Sequence record: MG752970.1
Direction: 5' to 3' (one strand)
DNA length: 64,000 nucleotides
Positions 1-10,282 of this stretch are shown piece by piece (position 1 is the first letter of the stretch; the number at the start of each line of letters is the position of its first letter). The translations under genes and the position numbers were made by a program. A model generated the notes under the pieces. The model was not told the DNA's origin, did not search any database, and saw nothing but the letters and a program-made list of their open reading frames with translations.

Positions 1-1038
1 GCCCTTTATTTCATGACCTAAATATGGTGAAAAATTTTTGATTCTTACTTTATTAGCGGCGAGAGCACAACCAAGAGAACTTCCGGCATCCCCTGGATTA
101 GGCATAATCCAAATTCGATGAGGATAGTTTCGTAATATTCTAGAATTAGCAACACAATTCAGCGCACATCCTCCAGACAAAATCAAATTGTCTTCTGGAC
201 GCGCAAACAAACAAACCAATTCATGTAAGGCATATTCAATGTTGAGCTGCGCGAATTTTGCAATTTTGCATTTCTGTTCAAAAGTTAGCTCACCATGTTC
301 CTTAAGAAAATCAGGTGAAACTCCCTTATGCATGTTCTTTATGTTTTGATAATTCGTAGATGCATACCTGAGTGGATCATCTTCCTTTTGAATGTATTTC
401 TTAAGAAGACGGATGGTACTATCCATGTTGAGTTGCTGAAGACTTTGATCACAAAATCCAGCCATTCCCATTAGGATATATTCTTCCTCATTTGGTTTCA
501 AACCCACTAACTGCGTCATTGCAGTGTAGAACAAACCATGACTAAATGGATATCGTCTACTAGCAAGCTTGGTTAAAGAATTACCTTCCGCTCTCCAGGC
601 ACTTACAGTGTCAAACTCCCCAATGGCATCCATAACAATGATGGTGGCAGCATCAAAGTTGCTTGTAAAGAAACCACCAGCAGCGTGTGATTCATGGTGA
701 TCTACATATTGAAGATTTTTAATCGCCTTAAGTATCTTTGGTGATTTGAAGTCAATGCTTTTCTTCAGGTATCGTTTAGGTAAATCACTCATAGCCAAGG
801 CATGTTTAAATTGCCCAGCGAGTAGGTGACGCAGCTTCTTCTTGTATGGATTTTCATACCATACCATCTTGTCAGGATCACCGAATTTCAAAGCTGCATA
901 TATCAAATCTGAATGCAGCTTATCATCGTTTTTTATTCTTGAATATCTTTCTGAATGAGCGGCAAAAAGAATCTCGTCATCTTTTAATACCGTGATTGAC
1001 GCGTCATGAGACAGCGCGGTAATTCCCCACGTGATCAT
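1..1038 (-). CDS. Carbamoyltransferase (NodU/CmcH/TobZ family), 3' end outside window
   Basis: Own translation (missed by ORF track): MITWGITALSHDASITV...HSERYSRIKND...HHESHAAGGF...LSGGCALNCVAN...PNPGDAGSSLG...SPYLG, open to base 1; ATG overlaps upstream TGA. Confidence 0.92.
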   Translation of the reverse strand, partial: MITWGITALSHDASITVLKDDEILFAAHSERYSRIKNDDKLHSDLIYAALKFGDPDKMVWYENPYKKKLRHLLAGQFKHALAMSDLPKRYLKKSIDFKSPKILKAIKNLQYVDHHESHAAGGFFTSNFDAATIIVMDAIGEFDTVSAWRAEGNSLTKLASRRYPFSHGLFYTAMTQLVGLKPNEEEYILMGMAGFCDQSLQQLNMDSTIRLLKKYIQKEDDPLRYASTNYQNIKNMHKGVSPDFLKEHGELTFEQKCKIAKFAQLNIEYALHELVCLFARPEDNLILSGGCALNCVANSRILRNYPHRIWIMPNPGDAGSSLGCALAANKVRIKNFSPYLGHEIKG

Positions 1039-1889
1039 ATGAATAGTTCTTTGTTTTTGTTGATGTGGTCTACTATGTATTCAGACCAAAGTTTGTGAGA
1101 TTCTTCTAATGGGTGATCTCTTGGGCCTACTGGAAGATTATTGTAATACAGGCAGTAATTTCTAAATGTGTGTGACCAATCCAAACCATTTTTCATGAGC
1201 CACTTTTCGTCCCATCCTATCCAGCGTTGAGGATCAAATAGCTTGAATAATGCGTTGCCATGAACAACCGGGTTATCTGATGGATTTTGTTCCATATTTG
1301 TTATCATTCCTAACGCTATTGAGAACAAATACTTTACGCCCAGTGCCTTCAAGAATGATTCCAAACCTGAAATCAAAACCATGGTTTGTTGAATGAGAGA
1401 CCTGGTATCAGTGAATCTGGTTAGATACATGTCTGACATAGATTTAAGCTGCTCATCTTGGTAATTCATAGTAAGATGAAGATCGAAAAATCTTCCAGCG
1501 GTCTTGTCATACATTTCTAGTCGTGCCATACTTGTAAAACCTATAAGCACGACAATGTTTTCGGGTTTCACCCCACGATTGATCATTTCCGCAACGTGAT
1601 GCATCGTGCGTCTGGCTATTCTAGAATTAGATCCACCACACATTGCATCATTCATAAGAGTGTGATCGGGAAATACCGAATTTCTAACTAGATAGGGATA
1701 GCTGGCTTTGATTCTACTATCGTGATAGTTTGACGGGACGTGAGATGGAAGATTGAAATATGGAGATGTCCAATCTGAAATTCCACACAGCTCTTGTCCG
1801 TACGTCATGGAACAACCATTGACGTACATTATCTTAGAGTCTTCGTTTAAAGATGAAACTAAATCTTCAAACTTCAAAGCGTAGTCCAT
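1035..1889 (-). CDS. SGNH/GDSL-like protein (paralogue 3)
   Basis: Block I-like NGCSMTYG, GGSN, C-terminal DHPLEESH; clearly similar to 1998-2849 and 4198-5043. Confidence 0.7.
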   Translation of the reverse strand: MDYALKFEDLVSSLNEDSKIMYVNGCSMTYGQELCGISDWTSPYFNLPSHVPSNYHDSRIKASYPYLVRNSVFPDHTLMNDAMCGGSNSRIARRTMHHVAEMINRGVKPENIVVLIGFTSMARLEMYDKTAGRFFDLHLTMNYQDEQLKSMSDMYLTRFTDTRSLIQQTMVLISGLESFLKALGVKYLFSIALGMITNMEQNPSDNPVVHGNALFKLFDPQRWIGWDEKWLMKNGLDWSHTFRNYCLYYNNLPVGPRDHPLEESHKLWSEYIVDHINKNKELFI

Positions 1890-1890
1890 C

Positions 1891-2001
1891 TTATTTGTAA
1901 ATGAAAGGATCCTGTTTTCTGATTTGATCGCGAATTTTTTCAGCTTCTGTTTTTTCTTTTACAAAGAAAGACTTCAACCAGTTAACCAATTTTTGAATCA
2001 T
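1891..2001 (-). CDS. 36-aa peptide MIQKLVNWLKSFFVKKKTEAEKIRDQIRKQDPFIYK
   Basis: Own translation; fills the gap exactly, with ATGA overlap to the upstream gene. Confidence 0.7.
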   Translation of the reverse strand: MIQKLVNWLKSFFVKEKTEAEKIRDQIRKQDPFIYK

Positions 2002-2849
2002 AGCAAATTTTCCTTATTCTGTATGCACGCAATTAGTGCGTCCGCCCATGCCTTGTGCGCTTCTTCAAGAGGATGATAATTAGGTCCAATAGGATATTGT
2101 TTTCTAATTGACCATGATCCAAAGTCAGTGGACCACATTGACTTTGTTTTGTTGAGAAGCTCTTCATTGTACATAAGCCATTTGGACATATCGATGGCTT
2201 TATACAATGGGTGATCTACTAATTGAATTCTGTCGTTATGCTCCACGCTGAGCATCGTCATTGGAATGCCCTCGCATAACGCATATTTTACTCCAACCGA
2301 TTTCAAAAAGCTTTGCATTTGCAAAATATTCATCAAAGCTTCTATTGCAACTGATTTAGGAGCAACGAAATTTTCCAGGTATAAATCTGCAAATTCGTTA
2401 TAGTGTTTTTCAGGACCACCATATTTTAGAGTTAAAAAGAGATCAATCCAATTTTCCTTTTTGGAATCATATAATCCCAATCTCAACATGTTTGTAAAAC
2501 TAATTACCACGAATATGTTTTCCGGTTTTACACCAAGTTGAAGCATAGAATTTATATGCGTCAATGTTACTCTGAATATTCGATGATTTGACGATCCACC
2601 CTGCGCGGCGTTAAAGAAGATGTGATCAGAAAATAGAGCCGAGTGCATGTGACCAGCCCAACATCTCTTCAATCTTTCATGATGATAATCTTGTGGAAGA
2701 AAATCAAAATGATTGAAGACATCTGTATATTCTGAAATTCCACACAGCTCTTGTCCGTACGTCATGGAGCAACCATTAACATAAAAGACCTTACTATCCG
2801 GAGTAAGGTCCTTCTCTAGTTCGCTGTATAGTAAATAGTCCTTACTCAT
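1998..2849 (-). CDS. SGNH/GDSL-like protein (paralogue 2)
   Basis: NGCSMTYG, GGSSN, YHPLEEAH motifs. Confidence 0.7.
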   Translation of the reverse strand: MSKDYLLYSELEKDLTPDSKVFYVNGCSMTYGQELCGISEYTDVFNHFDFLPQDYHHERLKRCWAGHMHSALFSDHIFFNAAQGGSSNHRIFRVTLTHINSMLQLGVKPENIFVVISFTNMLRLGLYDSKKENWIDLFLTLKYGGPEKHYNEFADLYLENFVAPKSVAIEALMNILQMQSFLKSVGVKYALCEGIPMTMLSVEHNDRIQLVDHPLYKAIDMSKWLMYNEELLNKTKSMWSTDFGSWSIRKQYPIGPNYHPLEEAHKAWADALIACIQNKENLL

Positions 2850-4228
2850 TGTTGAACTGTTATTGGAATAGTTTTTCTGATTTTAGCAAACCACTCTGCA
2901 AGTTCTGGAAAAGTAGCCGAAAAATCCTTGCCTCTACGAACATCGTATTGATCATAGAATGTCTTAAAATCTGCATGCAATAATTTCTTGTCAGATGTAT
3001 TTGCATGCGGAGTTTTGACAGCATCCAAATAATCAACCAGTCTCTGAGTTGCATCTATTTCCATTTCTGTCATCATCGGATGTGTGCGATTTGCATCCAA
3101 CCAATTTTTCAATTGCAAATGCCTATCCAAAATTTGATCTTCAGGAAGAGCCAATGGGCTCATGAATGACGGGAAACGCAATAGATTAAGAGACATAACT
3201 ATTCGTTGCTTACCAAATTTCTCTTTTAGGCCTAGAATGTATTCCATGAAATCGGTCATGCCATACAAGCATAGAGAATTGATAGTCATCATGACACCAA
3301 TTTTCTTAACATTTGATTCTTCTAGAACTCTTTCAAGGTTTTTCTGCCAATATGCATAATCTAAACCATCTCTTATGTATTCCGCCTTTGCACCAAATGT
3401 CTCACATGACGTATACAAATCTAGATTTTTTACGCCATGACTTTTCTCAATGAATCTGTCAATAAGAGCTTCCTTACCGCCCAAATTTGAATTCACTGCA
3501 AAGTTCATGTCTAACTGTTGTTCAGCAAACATATCAAACAATTTCCATACATCATCTGACATGAGAGGTTCTCCACCAGTAATTCGCAATTCTGTCAGAG
3601 ATTGAGATAGCTCTGGCCACCAATCCCAAAATGCCTTGATGTATGGATTCGCATCCTTGTCTTTCTGTGGGACAGCATCTGCCCATGAACCATCATGCGT
3701 GTAGGCGCCACCGCCATCACTGACTAAATCAGTATAAATTCCATTTTTCTTGATGTCATTTGCCCACGTAGTTGAGAATGATGCATTGCAGTAAGAACAT
3801 GCGAAATTACAGGTTCTGTCAAAAGCAATCTCTAGAGTTTTAAGATTCACGTCATCCTCATATCCACGCTGCATCGCTAATTGTAGATCTTCATCGGTGT
3901 AAATGACAGATTTCCAAACACGATCAGAAACGTTATCTCTAGAAACATCCTCAACCTTCCAACAATATTCGCATTCTTGTGGACGCTCACCATTCAGCAT
4001 CATGCGACGCATTTCTTTCTTATGCTTCGTGTTGTGAATGGCCGATGGATTGGTAAGAATTTCTTCTTTGTCGATGGGTTGCGCTGGAGGGTGATGACAG
4101 CTCGTGGTGCTTCCGGATCCCAGCCATATTGTTGCGTTGTACCACTTTGCCCCGCAAAACGTGGATGAAATTGGGTCTAATACCCGCTTCTTATAATCTA
4201 TGTATGATTCGTTTCTTTGTTTTGGCAT
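2846..4228 (-). CDS. Radical SAM protein with N-terminal twitch/SPASM-like Cys cluster
   Basis: CNFACSYC (CxxxCxxC), TGGEP; N-terminal FC...CHH...CEYCW. Confidence 0.88.
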   Translation of the reverse strand: MPKQRNESYIDYKKRVLDPISSTFCGAKWYNATIWLGSGSTTSCHHPPAQPIDKEEILTNPSAIHNTKHKKEMRRMMLNGERPQECEYCWKVEDVSRDNVSDRVWKSVIYTDEDLQLAMQRGYEDDVNLKTLEIAFDRTCNFACSYCNASFSTTWANDIKKNGIYTDLVSDGGGAYTHDGSWADAVPQKDKDANPYIKAFWDWWPELSQSLTELRITGGEPLMSDDVWKLFDMFAEQQLDMNFAVNSNLGGKEALIDRFIEKSHGVKNLDLYTSCETFGAKAEYIRDGLDYAYWQKNLERVLEESNVKKIGVMMTINSLCLYGMTDFMEYILGLKEKFGKQRIVMSLNLLRFPSFMSPLALPEDQILDRHLQLKNWLDANRTHPMMTEMEIDATQRLVDYLDAVKTPHANTSDKKLLHADFKTFYDQYDVRRGKDFSATFPELAEWFAKIRKTIPITVQQ

Positions 4229-5043
4229 CGTTTAGTATAGAACTCTATTAGTGAGTGCGCCCATAATTTATGCCCATCTTCAAGAGGGTGATCCCCTGAC
4301 CCAAATTGAACATTATGCCGGCGACTGTGGGCATTGAATGAAATTGCAAATTCACTTCTTTCACCCATCATATCCGTACCAGCGTATTTATCAAGGTCAA
4401 TGTGACCAAATGTCACCAAAGATTTGGCGGGTGTGTGACTAAATCCTTCAGCAAAATCCGGATATATGTCAAGGGAGTTACTGAATAGGTAATTTATTTT
4501 GTATTGCTTCAGAATGCTTTGAAGACTTAAAATTTGTTGATTAATTTTCCTGGCTAAAGAAACAGTGTCATAGAGCTCCATCATCTGAATTTCGGCCATT
4601 TTATTTGCCAATTCACTCTTTAACCATTTGGCACCAGGAACCACACTGTAATAATTTTTATTGATGCGTTCATATATTTCAAATCGCATCCCATGAGTCC
4701 ATCCTATTAATACAAATATGTTTTCAGGTTTTATTCCAAAATCAATTAAAGTCAACACATCATCGATGGTTGTTCTCATTATTCTATCATTGGCACTTCC
4801 ACCTTTTGCAGCATTGAAGTATCTATGATTTGGAAATAATGAGGATCTAAATATGCCAGGAAATGCGTTATTAATTCGATAATCATTATATGAAAATGAT
4901 TTATCATCTACCCACGTTGTTCCATCTTTTCCGCCCAATTCAGCGCCAAATACCATTGAACATCCATTGGTGTAGAACACTTTATCTTCTGGTGTCAGTG
5001 TTTTTATGAAGTCTGGAAGTGTCCAGATGAACTCAGTCATCAT
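4198..5043 (-). CDS. SGNH/GDSL-like protein (paralogue 1)
   Basis: NGCSMVFG, GSAN, DHPLEDGH motifs. Confidence 0.7.
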   Translation of the reverse strand: MMTEFIWTLPDFIKTLTPEDKVFYTNGCSMVFGAELGGKDGTTWVDDKSFSYNDYRINNAFPGIFRSSLFPNHRYFNAAKGGSANDRIMRTTIDDVLTLIDFGIKPENIFVLIGWTHGMRFEIYERINKNYYSVVPGAKWLKSELANKMAEIQMMELYDTVSLARKINQQILSLQSILKQYKINYLFSNSLDIYPDFAEGFSHTPAKSLVTFGHIDLDKYAGTDMMGERSEFAISFNAHSRRHNVQFGSGDHPLEDGHKLWAHSLIEFYTKRCQNKETNHT

Positions 5044-5062
5044 CGGTCTCCTTTTATGTGGG

Positions 5063-5070
5063 TATTTATA
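5063..5070 (-). promoter_or_regulatory. T4-type late promoter TATAAATA
   Basis: Exact TATAAATA on minus strand 20 nt upstream of the 4198-5043 start. Confidence 0.7.
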
Positions 5071-5075
5071 ACGTC

Positions 5076-5103
5076 AAAAGGGGCTCAGAGATGAGCCCCT
5101 TTT
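5076..5103. terminator. Rho-independent terminator
   Basis: ggggctca-gaga-tgagcccc stem flanked by A and T tracts, just after ligase stop. Confidence 0.85.
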
Positions 5104-5119
5104 AGTGAATTTCAGGTTT

Positions 5120-6403
5120 TTACTTATCGTCGCGGAATCTCACAAAGATAGGCCAACGTGCGGAGTATTCTCCCTTGGAAACAGAGATTTCACCTGCTTC
5201 AATTTCACAGGTAACATCGAGATAATCTTCTTGGTTTTTCCAAATAAGATCGCGCATGGCATCATCAAAACCAGATCCGCATTTTGCTTTGATGAAGGTT
5301 CCATTTTCATCATAACCTTCAAGGAAGACACCGCCAAGAGTATGCTCAAGACGGGTACCCTTGCGTCCTGGATAGAATCCAACAATCTTCAAATCCAAGG
5401 TGATGATGCCCTTCCATTTAGCCCACGAATTGGTTCGATCCCATTCGTAGAGAGCACCCAATTTCTTGACGATGATACCTTCACCAGGTTTCCCACCGAT
5501 CAATTCGCTACGAATCTTTTCAAAGAAGGCTTTGACTTCCGCATAATTATTGCAGTCAACACCTTCTGTTTTCATCAGCTTGTGATCGGGTTTCTCCTTC
5601 GTGAGTCGATCGATTACTGCCAAAACATCTTTAGTACGGTCTTCTTGAACGCGATCCCACTTCTTAGCTTCCCATGCATCGAGCGGCATCATGTCAAATA
5701 CATAGAGTCGCTGCTCAAGCTTTGCTTTAGCTCCTTTCGATTTGGATTTGGCATTCAATGCGCTCGTGAAATCCGTACCAAGAACTTCACAATCCAGAAT
5801 GAAAGGCTGGCCGATAATTTGCTCCAGCACGATGAGGTCTTCATCAAAGAGACCTTCAAGATGCGAATGTACCAAACCACTACGAGAGTAATGGATAACT
5901 TCGCCAGAGTTTACGATGGTGATGGAGCGAAGACCATCATGTTTGCGCTCGGCGCGACACGGGAATTCCCATTCGTAGTTGTCATCGACTTTTTCTGCCA
6001 ACATGACGTCAAAAGTCGGAATAGCATTTGGGTAAATCTTGTTGTAGGTGTCACCAGAGAAACCTGCTTTCGCATCCTTACCCAAAACTCGAGCCAGGAA
6101 AGAAGCAGTTTCTTCGGTATAAAGAGCAAGCGTTTGGGAGACAGCAGTCTTTGCTGCATTCCCGCGAAGCTCTTTGTTATGCAATTTGTCGAGAACAGCC
6201 AGCAGAGTTTCACCATTATCCACATCAACGTCTGCATGCTTCTCAATAGCATCCCATTTCCGCACGTGAAAGACACGATACGGGTTAAAAAGATTCCAGA
6301 AAAGCTTCTGCGCAACAGGACTCAAGTCCTTCAGAAGTTCCTGCTTAATGGCCTTCTTGTTGGTTTCTTCAACGGCCTTCAGAGTGGGAGCAAAATGTTT
6401 CAT
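5120..6403 (-). CDS. lig: ATP-dependent DNA ligase
   Basis: Motif I RKHDG, EGIIVK, WAKWK, OB domain GSGF, RWPIFVRFRDDK. Confidence 0.95.
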   Translation of the reverse strand: MKHFAPTLKAVEETNKKAIKQELLKDLSPVAQKLFWNLFNPYRVFHVRKWDAIEKHADVDVDNGETLLAVLDKLHNKELRGNAAKTAVSQTLALYTEETASFLARVLGKDAKAGFSGDTYNKIYPNAIPTFDVMLAEKVDDNYEWEFPCRAERKHDGLRSITIVNSGEVIHYSRSGLVHSHLEGLFDEDLIVLEQIIGQPFILDCEVLGTDFTSALNAKSKSKGAKAKLEQRLYVFDMMPLDAWEAKKWDRVQEDRTKDVLAVIDRLTKEKPDHKLMKTEGVDCNNYAEVKAFFEKIRSELIGGKPGEGIIVKKLGALYEWDRTNSWAKWKGIITLDLKIVGFYPGRKGTRLEHTLGGVFLEGYDENGTFIKAKCGSGFDDAMRDLIWKNQEDYLDVTCEIEAGEISVSKGEYSARWPIFVRFRDDK

Positions 6404-6735
6404 TATTCGTAGTGAGAACTAATTAGAGGAGCCACGTGATAGAGGCTTTCATGAAGTCCAGAAGTACCGCGCATGATCAAAGAATCCATGACACGAACAA
6501 CCACCTTTTCCAGGACTTCGTGATAATTATCATCCAAGATTTTGGATTTCTTAATCGACTTCTGTTCCATGATCCACGAATCGTAGGTATCAACAAAGTT
6601 GATAATCATGGTAGTGGCGGAACGCGAACCACCTTCAAGAAGTTTCAGGAAAATTTGATGCGTGAAGAATGGCACAATGTCGTTGCCAAAATTCAAATCC
6701 TTCAGCTTGATGCCGTTAATTTCCAGGTATTTCAT
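6403..6735 (-). CDS. Hypothetical protein
   Basis: Translationally coupled ORF in operon. Confidence 0.6.
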   Translation of the reverse strand: MKYLEINGIKLKDLNFGNDIVPFFTHQIFLKLLEGGSRSATTMIINFVDTYDSWIMEQKSIKKSKILDDNYHEVLEKVVVRVMDSLIMRGTSGLHESLYHVAPLISSHYE

Positions 6736-7100: not shown

Positions 7101-7108
7101 TATAAATA
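7101..7108 (+). promoter_or_regulatory. T4-type late promoter TATAAATA
   Basis: Exact motif upstream of 7136 ORF. Confidence 0.7.
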
Positions 7109-7564: not shown

Positions 7565-8578
7565 TTATTTCTGATCTACACCGTACAGACTACGCACCGT
7601 GGATTCTAGGAATGCTTCGTATTCCTCTCTCAGTTCCGGTGTGTATCGACGTAGTTTATTTTCACCTTCGTGCAATGTTTGGATTCTATCCAAAATTTCA
7701 CTCAGATTATCTACCACCGTGTCAAACTCCATTTGACCCAATTTGATCTTCATTAGATATTCTAAACGATCTTGCTTGTATGGAAACATGATGCTACCAT
7801 TCGTAAGCAGGTCACATGCCTGAAGTGCAATTCTGCAGGCATGATGGAATGCCTTCCAATCTACACCACCATCCTTGGCAGATTTTTGACTTCTAGCACC
7901 ATATTTAGAAATCATGGTATTGATTCTACTCAGAGCTTCTTGAAGATCAATGTTAACAGGGAACATTTTTCCGGTAACATCAACGCAAAGTTGTGGTGCC
8001 TGTGTTGGACTACCTTCAACGGTTTTCATACGAATAAATTCATTAGTATTTTCAGCAACCCAGTCTTCTAGCACTGCTAGCTTAGTAGTAACATCCACAC
8101 CCGAATCAATCGTAGCAACCAACTTGTCCTTGAATTTATTCAGCGATGCTAGCCGAGCTCCCTTGTCTCCATACACATGGGCTTGAGCTTGTGCGTAGCG
8201 CACCATTGGCTTTAGATTATCATTCAAATATCGTGCTAAAGCCGTACGAATAAATTCCGTGAAACGCGGATCATGAACTTGTTTGGCCGAATGGTTGAAG
8301 CTGAGTACCGAGAATGCAAGCTCAACCGCATATGTTTGGCCTTCAATGAAATCACGAGCAAATTTCTGAAATGGAATCATTTCGTGATCAACGTCTTCTG
8401 CACTATTTTTCTGACCAAATTGATCATTAGTTTTCAGATTATGTACGTTGATTGGACGAACAGTAAGAACATCATCCAGGTCCGGAAGATAGATTGACTT
8501 ATAGTCGGTATCCGAATTTGGAGTAGTAGTACCGTAAAGCTTTGATCCAAATTCTGTTGTATATAAAATTTTCTTCAT
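7565..8578 (-). CDS. Pol-beta superfamily nucleotidyltransferase
   Basis: FGSKLYG...SDTD catalytic motif; C-terminal helical domain (DWKAFHHACR). Confidence 0.8.
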   Translation of the reverse strand: MKKILYTTEFGSKLYGTTTPNSDTDYKSIYLPDLDDVLTVRPINVHNLKTNDQFGQKNSAEDVDHEMIPFQKFARDFIEGQTYAVELAFSVLSFNHSAKQVHDPRFTEFIRTALARYLNDNLKPMVRYAQAQAHVYGDKGARLASLNKFKDKLVATIDSGVDVTTKLAVLEDWVAENTNEFIRMKTVEGSPTQAPQLCVDVTGKMFPVNIDLQEALSRINTMISKYGARSQKSAKDGGVDWKAFHHACRIALQACDLLTNGSIMFPYKQDRLEYLMKIKLGQMEFDTVVDNLSEILDRIQTLHEGENKLRRYTPELREEYEAFLESTVRSLYGVDQK

Positions 8579-9297
8579 GAATTGTAATATTCCCCTGTTT
8601 TTCTTTCTTGCATCATGTCGATGTGCGGCTTCTTCCTATAATGTTCCACCATCTTATGAGCGGAATGATGTGTGATAACGTATCCCCTCTTACCATATTT
8701 ACCAAGTCTAGCTAACGTGACCCCATCATCCGTAGTTTGACAAAATTCGTTAAACGTGAGATGTTGCGCCGCAAAATTCTTAATCGCTTTGGTACTGTAC
8801 AGGACAGATTTTCCATCAGTTGCCATCTGGCATAGATGAAAATCAAATGTATCCAACAATTCAGTTGGTCGAGGTTTGTACATCACTTTGACTACGTTTA
8901 ACTTGAAATTACCAACACTAAAAGTACTGGAATTGCTCGTATGGTTCAAGAGTGGAAACTTCAAAACATCTTTAAGATTATTGATGGCAGCGATGGCATC
9001 CGCAGAATCTGTGAAGAATAAATCAACATCTCCTTTCAACTTTAAACCGTGACCGCCATTGTGATCCCAAATATCTCCCTCTAGTACTCTAGAAAGAAAT
9101 CCGCCCGCGATGTATGCCGTACGTAGATCAAGTGGTATTTGGCATTGCTGTTGAATAACCTTAACCACATCCTTGATAATAGATGCTGGATTTTGGGTTA
9201 TTTTTCTAATTGGCATCTCATCCTTGTTTAATGTCATGAATGTCTCGACATCGCTGCGCCACTGCCACAATGGGCTTAAACGGTATTCTTGTTTCAC
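8575..9297 (-). CDS. CCA-adding/poly(A) polymerase-like nucleotidyltransferase head domain
   Basis: IAGGF...GDVDLF, TFDFHLCQ motifs. Confidence 0.7.
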   Translation of the reverse strand: MKQEYRLSPLWQWRSDVETFMTLNKDEMPIRKITQNPASIIKDVVKVIQQQCQIPLDLRTAYIAGGFLSRVLEGDIWDHNGGHGLKLKGDVDLFFTDSADAIAAINNLKDVLKFPLLNHTSNSSTFSVGNFKLNVVKVMYKPRPTELLDTFDFHLCQMATDGKSVLYSTKAIKNFAAQHLTFNEFCQTTDDGVTLARLGKYGKRGYVITHHSAHKMVEHYRKKPHIDMMQERKTGEYYNS

Positions 9298-9875
9298 TGT
9301 ACTTGAAATCCAATAATATGGAGCTGCAGCACGATCACCATTGCATAGGAAATCGAGTGAGCCCTTTTGAAGGAGTATGAGTCTTCAAACCGTTCATCCG
9401 TAAAGTAGAGAAGAGGTCTAGTCTTTTCTCTATCTCGAATGTAGTGATCTAATAGATTACGTTTACCCGGTCTAATGAGTGCCAAACAATCTGCTAATTC
9501 TTGTATTGATCGTGGCTGTACTTTATCAATTATATCGAAATGATTACCTATGTGGAACAACTTTTCAACAATGGATGGGGACTTAAGGAGTTCCCAATTA
9601 GGTTCTAATTCTATTAATTGCTCAATTTCTTCTCGAGACTGAAAGAAGTCATACACATGCACTGGAAGAAAATCAAGCTTCATGTATCCTAATTCTTCAG
9701 CTTCTTTGTATGGAATGGCCGCAAAACCGGTGATTGGATCTTTAGCAATTCCCTGTGGATACATGCCAACATTGTGCTTCTTATACTGACCATTTTGTAT
9801 TTGCGCAGCGCGCACCCAATCAACAAAAGTTCGTTCAGGAACGAAAGCGGTCTGTAAATCTATGTCGATGTCCAT
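9294..9875 (-). CDS. dnaE: Split DNA polymerase III alpha-like (DnaE), catalytic fragment
   Basis: Begins MDIDID; KHNVG, KLDFL, ALIRPG, FKRAHSISY match DnaE palm/fingers motifs. Confidence 0.82.
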   Translation of the reverse strand: MDIDIDLQTAFVPERTFVDWVRAAQIQNGQYKKHNVGMYPQGIAKDPITGFAAIPYKEAEELGYMKLDFLPVHVYDFFQSREEIEQLIELEPNWELLKSPSIVEKLFHIGNHFDIIDKVQPRSIQELADCLALIRPGKRNLLDHYIRDREKTRPLLYFTDERFEDSYSFKRAHSISYAMVIVLQLHIIGFQVQ

Positions 9876-10232: not shown

Positions 10233-10282
10233 GATAGTTTCCTTCTAAAAAGAAATTAACAAACATATTTATAGCTACCGGA

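Follow-up and report, generated by a model that had tools for sequence, protein, structure and literature searches.

The window analysed here, a stretch of 64,000 nucleotides (nt), is 100% identical to positions 124001-188000 of record MG752970.1, the 343.8-kb genome of the Ralstonia jumbo myovirus RsoM2USA. This report concerns an operon at its left edge (Table 1) of seven genes, all on the minus strand and translationally coupled as one unit: the junctions comprise one 31-nt overlap, three 4-nt ATGA overlaps, and gaps of 1 nt and 3 nt. They encode three paralogues of the family DUF6071 with a predicted SGNH hydrolase fold, a radical S-adenosylmethionine (SAM) enzyme, here called rSAM-B, a carbamoyltransferase, and two small open reading frames (ORFs). 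DUF6071-3 sits immediately upstream of the carbamoyltransferase gene, which crosses the window edge and encodes 523 amino acids (aa) in the full record. Every gene of the region is labelled 'hypothetical protein' in GenBank, and the seven operon genes are not mentioned in the RsoM2USA paper. A preliminary description, made from the sequence letters, had proposed the order SGNH, radical SAM, SGNH, peptide, SGNH, carbamoyltransferase, and both this order and the translational coupling were borne out by the ORFs and the profile matches, with every element at its place on the minus strand. Genetic code table 11 sufficed for all translations.

Table 1. Coordinates of the operon and of associated features (window positions unless marked as record or locus positions)
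Feature	Position	Strand	Product	Evidence or remark
DUF6071-1, SGNH-fold hydrolase/acyltransferase-like	5043..4198	minus	281 aa	PF19547, E 7.9e-20
rSAM-B, radical SAM, N-twitch	4228..2846	minus	460 aa	NF033640, E 8e-91
DUF6071-2, SGNH-fold paralogue	2849..1998	minus	283 aa	PF19547, E 8.7e-10
Small ORF	2001..1891	minus	36 aa	translation; absent from GenBank annotation
DUF6071-3, SGNH-fold paralogue	1889..1035	minus	284 aa	PF19547, E 2.4e-12
Carbamoyltransferase	1038..<1	minus	N-terminal 346 aa in window	Carbam_trans_N, E 1e-34
Small ORF, coupled, after carbamoyltransferase	beyond left edge of window	minus	81 aa	
TATAAATA, T4-type late-promoter-like box	5063-5070	minus		19 nt before ATG at 5043
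Further sites of the late-promoter class include	7101-7108, 10266-10273			
GC-rich hairpin, probable terminator	about 5076-5103	minus		9-base-pair stem, 4-nt loop, short T run; after DNA ligase gene
DNA ligase, upstream flank	5120-6403	minus		phrog_114, E 7e-77
RsoM2USA_205 (GenBank), probably spurious	5105-6412	plus		almost entirely within the ligase gene
SLOG gene coupled to DHFR gene, then DEAD_2 helicase gene	L001:9704-10093, 9157-9711; record 121156-122092			left of window
Distant glycosyltransferase core block	record 215949-223586			c4/c6-like, c3, c2, c2, c1, rSAM-A, short c1, c8
Tail-fibre-like gene of core block	record 222384-223586			
Second ThyA-family gene	record about 7607-8497 (L113:1369-2259)	minus		85 bits, against 242 for record 334307-335206

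Promoter class and flanking genes

Ahead of the first gene stands TATAAATA, and an AAGGAG Shine-Dalgarno sequence lies between this box and the start codon. The window holds six exact copies (3.4 expected) and the genome 17, exactly the median count of 8-mers with this composition. Since exact copies are not enriched, TATAAATA was rejected as the genome-wide late signal in favour of NATAAATA. When k-mers were counted in 194 non-coding regions upstream of genes, ATAAATA occurred in 51 (2.3 expected) and TAAATA in 80 (5.8 expected). NATAAATA itself shows an enrichment of about 22-fold in front of genes; it stands before 57 of them, mostly 15-35 nt ahead of the start codon. Besides the operon studied here, whose TATAAATA is one member of the NATAAATA class, the genes concerned include those for the large terminase, the portal, the neck, the tail sheath, two baseplate proteins and a giant structural protein. 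The late-promoter consensus of RsoM2USA therefore appears to be NATAAATA, in which the first T of the T4 box is not conserved. The genome also encodes a homologue of the late sigma factor gp55 (E 5.8e-7, 27% identity), so that box, spacing, genome-wide use before virion genes and sigma factor type all resemble, at the level of sequence, a T4-type late unit. Because the operon shares the promoter type of the virion genes, its late expression is plausible. The box noted in the preliminary description is confirmed in its position and belongs to this class, with the one correction that the exact octamer is not over-represented. The 57 genes can be taken, provisionally, as the late regulon of a genome otherwise left unannotated.

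Just upstream of the box, the hairpin that follows the DNA ligase gene is a probable terminator, which would shield the operon from upstream transcription; a simple terminator scan overlooked it because only four T residues follow the stem. The ligase gene itself carries only a 'hypothetical' label in GenBank, and the plus-strand coding sequence RsoM2USA_205 drawn across it is probably a spurious call. Beyond the 3' side of the operon lie a small membrane-like ORF and genes for a YspA-type SLOG protein, a dihydrofolate reductase (DHFR) and a DEAD_2 helicase. The YspA/DprA-like SLOG gene is translationally coupled to the DHFR gene, and with the helicase gene the trio forms an unusual combination.

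Enzyme families of the operon

The three SGNH paralogues match only DUF6071 (PF19547) in Pfam, with 72, 39.1 and 47.5 bits for DUF6071-1, -2 and -3 against a gathering threshold of 27. They share 31-32% mutual identity, an NGCS motif near the N-terminus and an HPLE..H motif near the C-terminus. Narrow pattern searches of viral and genome contigs gave no DUF6071 relatives, the patterns being over-specific to the three paralogues, and a full HMMER search yielded 1152. An AlphaFold model of DUF6071-1 (predicted local distance difference test score, pLDDT, 89; predicted template modelling score 0.90) has a three-layer alpha/beta/alpha flavodoxin-like fold, and its top matches in Foldseek and VIA were all SGNH/GDSL esterases. 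These included TesA (Z 12.9, root-mean-square deviation 3.4 Å over 170 aligned residues), CE2 (Z 12) and acetyl-xylan esterases (Z 11-12). On the strength of this model, DUF6071 is an SGNH-fold family. When residue conservation was scored across 90 homologues, the four residues that give SGNH enzymes their name were found to be conserved as S29, G82, N85 and H252. S29, the block I nucleophile within NGCS, is at least 90% conserved, G82 (block II) and N85 (block III, oxyanion hole) are nearly invariant, and H252 is the sole fully invariant residue; the HP..E.H..W motif is likewise conserved. The canonical Asp at His-3 is not conserved, as this position reads S/P/P and His-1 reads D/Y/D in the three paralogues; catalysis may therefore rely on a Ser-His dyad, or E122, E255 or some other residue may serve as the acid. 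The SGNH assignment, for which the databases gave DUF6071 only, is thus backed by fold and conserved residues alike. The substitution of GCS for GDS and the HP..E.H motif, both remarked on earlier, recur in the three paralogues and in the family: GCS is the norm for block I, found in 40 of 72 members from phage loci compared to 11 of 72 with GDS.

No signal peptide was seen on inspection of the SGNH proteins. A quick maximum-likelihood tree placed DUF6071-2 and DUF6071-3 as sisters (Shimodaira-Hasegawa-like approximate likelihood ratio test, SH-aLRT, 95) and the three together in one cluster (SH-aLRT 83), which suggests a lineage-specific duplication; the idea that they are ancient, distinct subfamilies is unsupported by this grouping, itself weakly supported. 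The specificities of the three enzymes are probably related yet distinct. A literature search found no studied member of the family, which is catalogued only as DUF6071.

The radical SAM assignment also holds, since rSAM-B reaches 305 bits in the NCBIfam family NF033640 ('twitch domain-containing radical SAM protein'; cut-off 170), although it stays under the threshold of Pfam Radical_SAM (21.5 bits, threshold 29.5). Like DUF6071, NF033640 has no characterised member; the superfamilies to which the two belong are themselves known. In 32 paralogues and orthologues the CX3CX2C motif (C140/C144/C147), the GGEP motif (G218-G219-E220-P221) and the N-terminal cysteines 25, 44, 86 and 89 are all invariant. 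The N-terminal domain profile matches the twitch domain of BtrN (E 3e-5) and is predicted to be an auxiliary Fe-S domain, and the core profile aligns with TigE (8VPO, a cyclopropyl synthase for ribosomally synthesised peptides with post-translational modifications, RiPPs; E 6e-12), BlsE and MoaA. More than 8000 metagenomic relatives share 55-65% identity with rSAM-B and fall in clusters that are 91-100% viral. The family is not exclusively viral, since tandem members also occur in bacterial metagenome-assembled genomes (MAGs), one of Oligoflexia (L004) and one with four copies (L028), in neighbourhoods with GT1, GT2 and PMT_2 genes, ABC-2 transporters and a PqqD gene. In a metagenomic relative with 81% identity (L003:1181-2599), Ser replaces the first Cys of CX3CX2C and a second change lies nearby; as the coverage of this contig is only about 2.5x, a sequencing error may account for this instead of an inactivation of the enzyme.

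The complete carbamoyltransferase carries Carbam_trans_N (PF02543, E 5e-34) and Carbam_trans_C (PF16861, E 2.5e-54) in one chain. Its relatives in the PDB are NovN, GdmN and TobZ (E 4e-53 to 1e-37), and phrog_1601 matches as well. These data uphold the NodU/TobZ-type assignment of the preliminary description. The NodU equivalog NF041651 was not reached (128 bits, cut-off 1000), so by sequence the protein is a member of the NodU/CmcH/TobZ family and not a NodU orthologue.

Glycosylation islands in other phages and the core of RsoM2USA

Among 50,697 cultured phage records, a tblastn search with DUF6071-1 found RsoM2USA alone. Radical SAM genes related to rSAM-B were otherwise confined to Vibrio phages, at about 21% identity, and the GT-A-type glycosyltransferase described below was found in no other cultured phage. 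As the sole carrier in this set, RsoM2USA is therefore the one tractable system found for testing these enzymes. A metagenomic relative with 81% identity (L002) has the ligase, DUF6071, rSAM, DUF6071 and small ORF genes arranged as in RsoM2USA.

A census of 80 IMG/VR loci (L030-L109), based on ORF calling, hidden Markov models and clustering, revealed a different setting. Tandem radical SAM paralogues number 1-8 per locus, and 2-8 in all except two. DUF6071-type SGNH genes are present in 39 loci, and in 25 of these directly adjoin a radical SAM gene. The carbamoyltransferase is rarer, with six of the 80 loci and the metagenomic loci L005, L006 and L111, and usually has an SGNH gene immediately before it. 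This pair recurs in L005, L006, L088 and L111, suggesting that the two enzymes act on the same or on neighbouring sites.

The genes follow a stereotyped order, which in terms of protein clusters reads c6-c6-c4-c4-c3-c2-c2-c7-c1-(rSAM x n)-c5/SGNH/... Cluster c6 corresponds to 'baseplate wedge subunit and tail pin' and other virion structural proteins of PA5oct-like, Atu_ph07-like and Xanthomonas jumbo phages. The c2 proteins, present in two copies, are glycosyltransferase 8 (GT8)/glycogenin-like (profile match to the PDB, E 3e-5). Models of c1, built from natural IMG/VR homologues (pLDDT 87), show a GT-A fold with an invariant DxD motif; their top Foldseek matches were all GT-A glycosyltransferases, namely WrtF, ThuS/SunS, the capsid glycosyltransferase A64R of chlorovirus PBCV-1, and TarP. 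In addition, c8 is weakly methyltransferase-like (E 0.01), and c5, a protein of about 440 aa interspersed in the radical SAM arrays (e.g., L092, L096 and L109), had no Pfam, PHROG or PDB-profile match. Genes for nucleotide-sugar enzymes (UDP-glucose dehydrogenase, DegT aminotransferase and epimerases) occur in the radical SAM loci as well. No flippase, Wzy/polymerase, acyl-carrier, exporter or membrane protein gene was found within the viral modules.

The preliminary description had favoured glycans over DNA as the target and pointed to the flanks as a place to look for glycosyltransferases. None was found there or in the operon, the neighbours being DNA-metabolism genes (ligase, DHFR, helicase), and in this part the proposal is not supported. 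It is supported by the orthologues, which lie in islands with GT8-like and GT-A genes beside baseplate- or fibre-like genes, and by RsoM2USA itself, which holds a glycosyltransferase core elsewhere (L020, L021 and L114). This core block, about 90 kb from the operon, comprises two GT8-like, two GT-A-like, tail-fibre-like and methyltransferase-like genes, all 'hypothetical' in GenBank, together with rSAM-A, a second N-twitch radical SAM enzyme (477 aa) that is 34.5% identical to rSAM-B. In 69 of the 80 IMG/VR loci, an rSAM-B orthologue follows one or two genes after an rSAM-A orthologue; of the 57 loci that have at least 6 kb of upstream sequence, 46 also carry c1/c2 glycosyltransferases at most eight genes upstream. 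The block is co-oriented with, and just downstream of, genes for the virion protein ORF356, a GDP-mannose 4,6-dehydratase and the tail sheath; ORF356 was identified as a virion protein by the published gel electrophoresis and mass spectrometry (SDS-PAGE/MS) of RsoM2USA. Operon and core locus both have NATAAATA promoters.

Whereas the glycosyltransferases adjoin the tailoring genes in most IMG/VR loci, they do not in RsoM2USA, and the link between operon and island is therefore one of orthology and not of adjacency. Given the linkage of the orthologues in the IMG/VR loci and the presence of the core in RsoM2USA, the operon is best seen as the accessory tailoring part of the island, probably a detached half that in RsoM2USA has moved 90 kb away.

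Proposed role and comparison with known systems

We give about an even chance to the reading that RsoM2USA encodes a cytoplasmic glycosylation system of which the operon forms the tailoring half. From the observed enzyme families, intact catalytic motifs, promoter class and comparative gene linkage we infer a substrate class, a reaction order and an acceptor, as follows. Late in infection, the GT8-like and GT-A enzymes of the core would build a glycan from phage-made nucleotide sugars, most likely on a baseplate or tail-fibre protein of the virion. By analogy with twitch enzymes acting on carbohydrates, the N-twitch radical SAM enzyme would alter a sugar by oxidation, epimerisation, deoxygenation or C-methylation, and the three SGNH paralogues would add or remove O-acyl groups, each at a distinct position. 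The TobZ-like enzyme would convert carbamoyl phosphate and ATP into carbamoyl-adenylate and then O-carbamoylate a free hydroxyl, which the SGNH enzyme encoded immediately upstream may have exposed or prepared. The lack of flippase, polymerase and exporter genes in the viral modules and of signal peptides in the SGNH proteins fits a cytoplasmic acceptor, and the missing export genes, together with the placement beside baseplate and fibre genes, point to virion proteins.

Several points weigh against this reading. The linkage on which it draws comes from other phages, which may represent few related lineages, and in RsoM2USA the operon has ligase, DHFR, SLOG and helicase genes, and no glycosyltransferase gene, around it. 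The solved radical SAM core closest to rSAM-B belongs to a peptide maturase, TigE. The published SDS-PAGE/MS of the virion was not aimed at glycans, and our search of public sequencing runs listed none for RsoM2USA. Finally, the description of hypervariable tail-fibre regions in pelagimyophages, which are rich in GT8 genes and contain 'radical SAM cassettes' (PMC7029224), favours modification of the host O-chain.

The last point leads to the alternative that the enzymes tailor a precursor of host lipopolysaccharide or exopolysaccharide, so that infected cells or debris stop adsorbing phage, resulting in superinfection exclusion or protection of progeny. PMC7029224 reads the pelagimyophage GT8 genes in this way, the radical SAM cassettes being merely noted in that region. 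The homologue in the Oligoflexia MAG is in keeping with it, having GT1, GT2 and PMT_2 genes and one for an ABC-2 type transporter around it. Moreover, SGNH enzymes and carbamoyltransferases often act on polysaccharides and on Nod-factor-like glycolipids. However, the promoter of the operon is of the late class, the viral modules contain no flippase, Wzy, acyl-carrier or membrane protein, and they are consistently found beside baseplate and fibre genes and not beside early takeover genes. We consider remodelling of the host surface unlikely.

Lower still we place a hypermodification of DNA or nucleotides, in which a hydroxymethyl-pyrimidine or other base would be decorated, for instance by O-carbamoylation, to evade restriction or CRISPR. 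Pathways of thymidine hypermodification are known in which radical SAM enzymes take part. The ligase gene on one side and the DHFR, SLOG and helicase genes on the other enclose the operon, and the 81%-identical relative L002 places it likewise. In addition, next to a dCMP deaminase gene RsoM2USA carries a divergent second gene of the ThyA family, whose product could be a deoxynucleoside monophosphate hydroxymethylase, and if so would hint at modified pyrimidines in the phage DNA. Late timing, which the preliminary description had used as an argument against DNA modification, does not exclude it, since Mom of phage Mu is a late DNA-modification gene, and late expression is in fact compatible with this alternative. 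Against it, the orthologues elsewhere adjoin glycosyltransferase and baseplate or fibre genes instead of replication genes, a kinase, a pyrophosphorylase and an aGPT-Pplase-type gene are all missing from the operon, and the RsoM2USA paper gives no evidence of modified DNA.

The least probable alternative, to which we attach very little weight, is a RiPP-like peptide or small molecule, in which the radical SAM enzyme would mature a peptide, perhaps the 36-aa ORF, with trimming or acylation and carbamoylation to follow as in crocagin biosynthesis: the nearest solved core is TigE, the fold matches of DUF6071 include the SGNH-like crocagin enzyme CgnD (Z 11.9), a PqqD gene lies near one bacterial radical SAM homologue, and the small ORF is conserved in L003 (81% identical), where its frame is retained and the first 24 codons show mostly synonymous or conservative changes, but the peptide is Lys-rich, helix-like and free of Cys, with few Thr/Ser and no repeat pattern of these, and Pfam gave no RiPP recognition element (RRE), protease or exporter in the viral loci and no RRE/PqqD match in the operon. 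The 36-aa ORF has no similarity to the small ORFs at equivalent places in L005 and L029, and the small ORFs beside orthologous radical SAM genes in other phages are mutually unrelated; as they are not conserved between phage lineages, a conserved RiPP precursor was rejected.

As a more tentative extension of the glycosylation reading, many uncultured myoviruses and RsoM2USA might share an uncharacterised system for glycan diversification, in which radical SAM arrays, DUF6071, methyltransferase-like and carbamoyltransferase enzymes rewrite the sugars placed by GT8 and GT-A enzymes on baseplate or fibre proteins. If this is true, the glycans on the virions would be hypervariable, carbamoylated and radically modified, and would shape host recognition or shield the fibres. 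Study of these enzymes in RsoM2USA could bring to light a new radical chemistry of sugars and a carbamoylated phage glycoconjugate, the first of its kind. A large viral radical SAM family, arranged in tandem beside host-recognition genes, points to important and unexplored phage biology, and RsoM2USA is the only cultured handle we found on this widespread viral gene island.

Compared to known enzymes, the DUF6071 proteins share with the SGNH/GDSL hydrolases TesA, CE2, CE3 and Axe2 the fold of the whole domain (Z 11-13) and the block residues Ser (I), Gly (II), Asn (III) and His (V), but differ from typical members in a block I that most often reads GCS instead of GDS, in that no Asp is conserved at His-3, and in the HPLE..H..W signature after the catalytic His. 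rSAM-B has CX3CX2C and a second Cys-rich domain in common with the carbohydrate twitch enzymes BtrN and BlsE and the SPASM RiPP maturase TigE, and differs from them in that its predicted auxiliary domain is N-terminal, as is typical of NF033640, its family overwhelmingly viral, and its paralogues arrayed in up to eight copies. With TobZ, NodU, CmcH, NovN and GdmN, the phage carbamoyltransferase shares a Kae1-like N domain and a YrdC-like C domain, and the motifs HD..., HHESH, GDAG, FGPRALGNRS and HVDGT.R of TobZ/NodU-type enzymes are visible in its sequence. By analogy, the expected chemistry is that of TobZ, i.e., formation of carbamoyl-AMP followed by O-carbamoyl transfer. At 523 aa it is shorter than these enzymes (558-700 aa), and it is phage-encoded.

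At the level of the gene cluster, a literature search for this combination in phage found no description. The hypervariable region of pelagimyophages (PMC7029224) is the same kind of neighbourhood, known from metagenomes; its description gives gene names only, and notes neither SGNH nor carbamoyltransferase genes nor a cultured representative. The systems that glycosylate the capsid of chlorovirus PBCV-1 and the capsids and tails of mycobacteriophages (Freeman et al. 2023) are not known to have a tailoring set of radical SAM, SGNH and carbamoyltransferase enzymes. In these systems, virus-encoded GT-A and nucleotide-sugar enzymes lie beside structural genes, expression is late and export machinery is absent, and it is to these systems that, judged by its genes, the RsoM2USA module can be likened.

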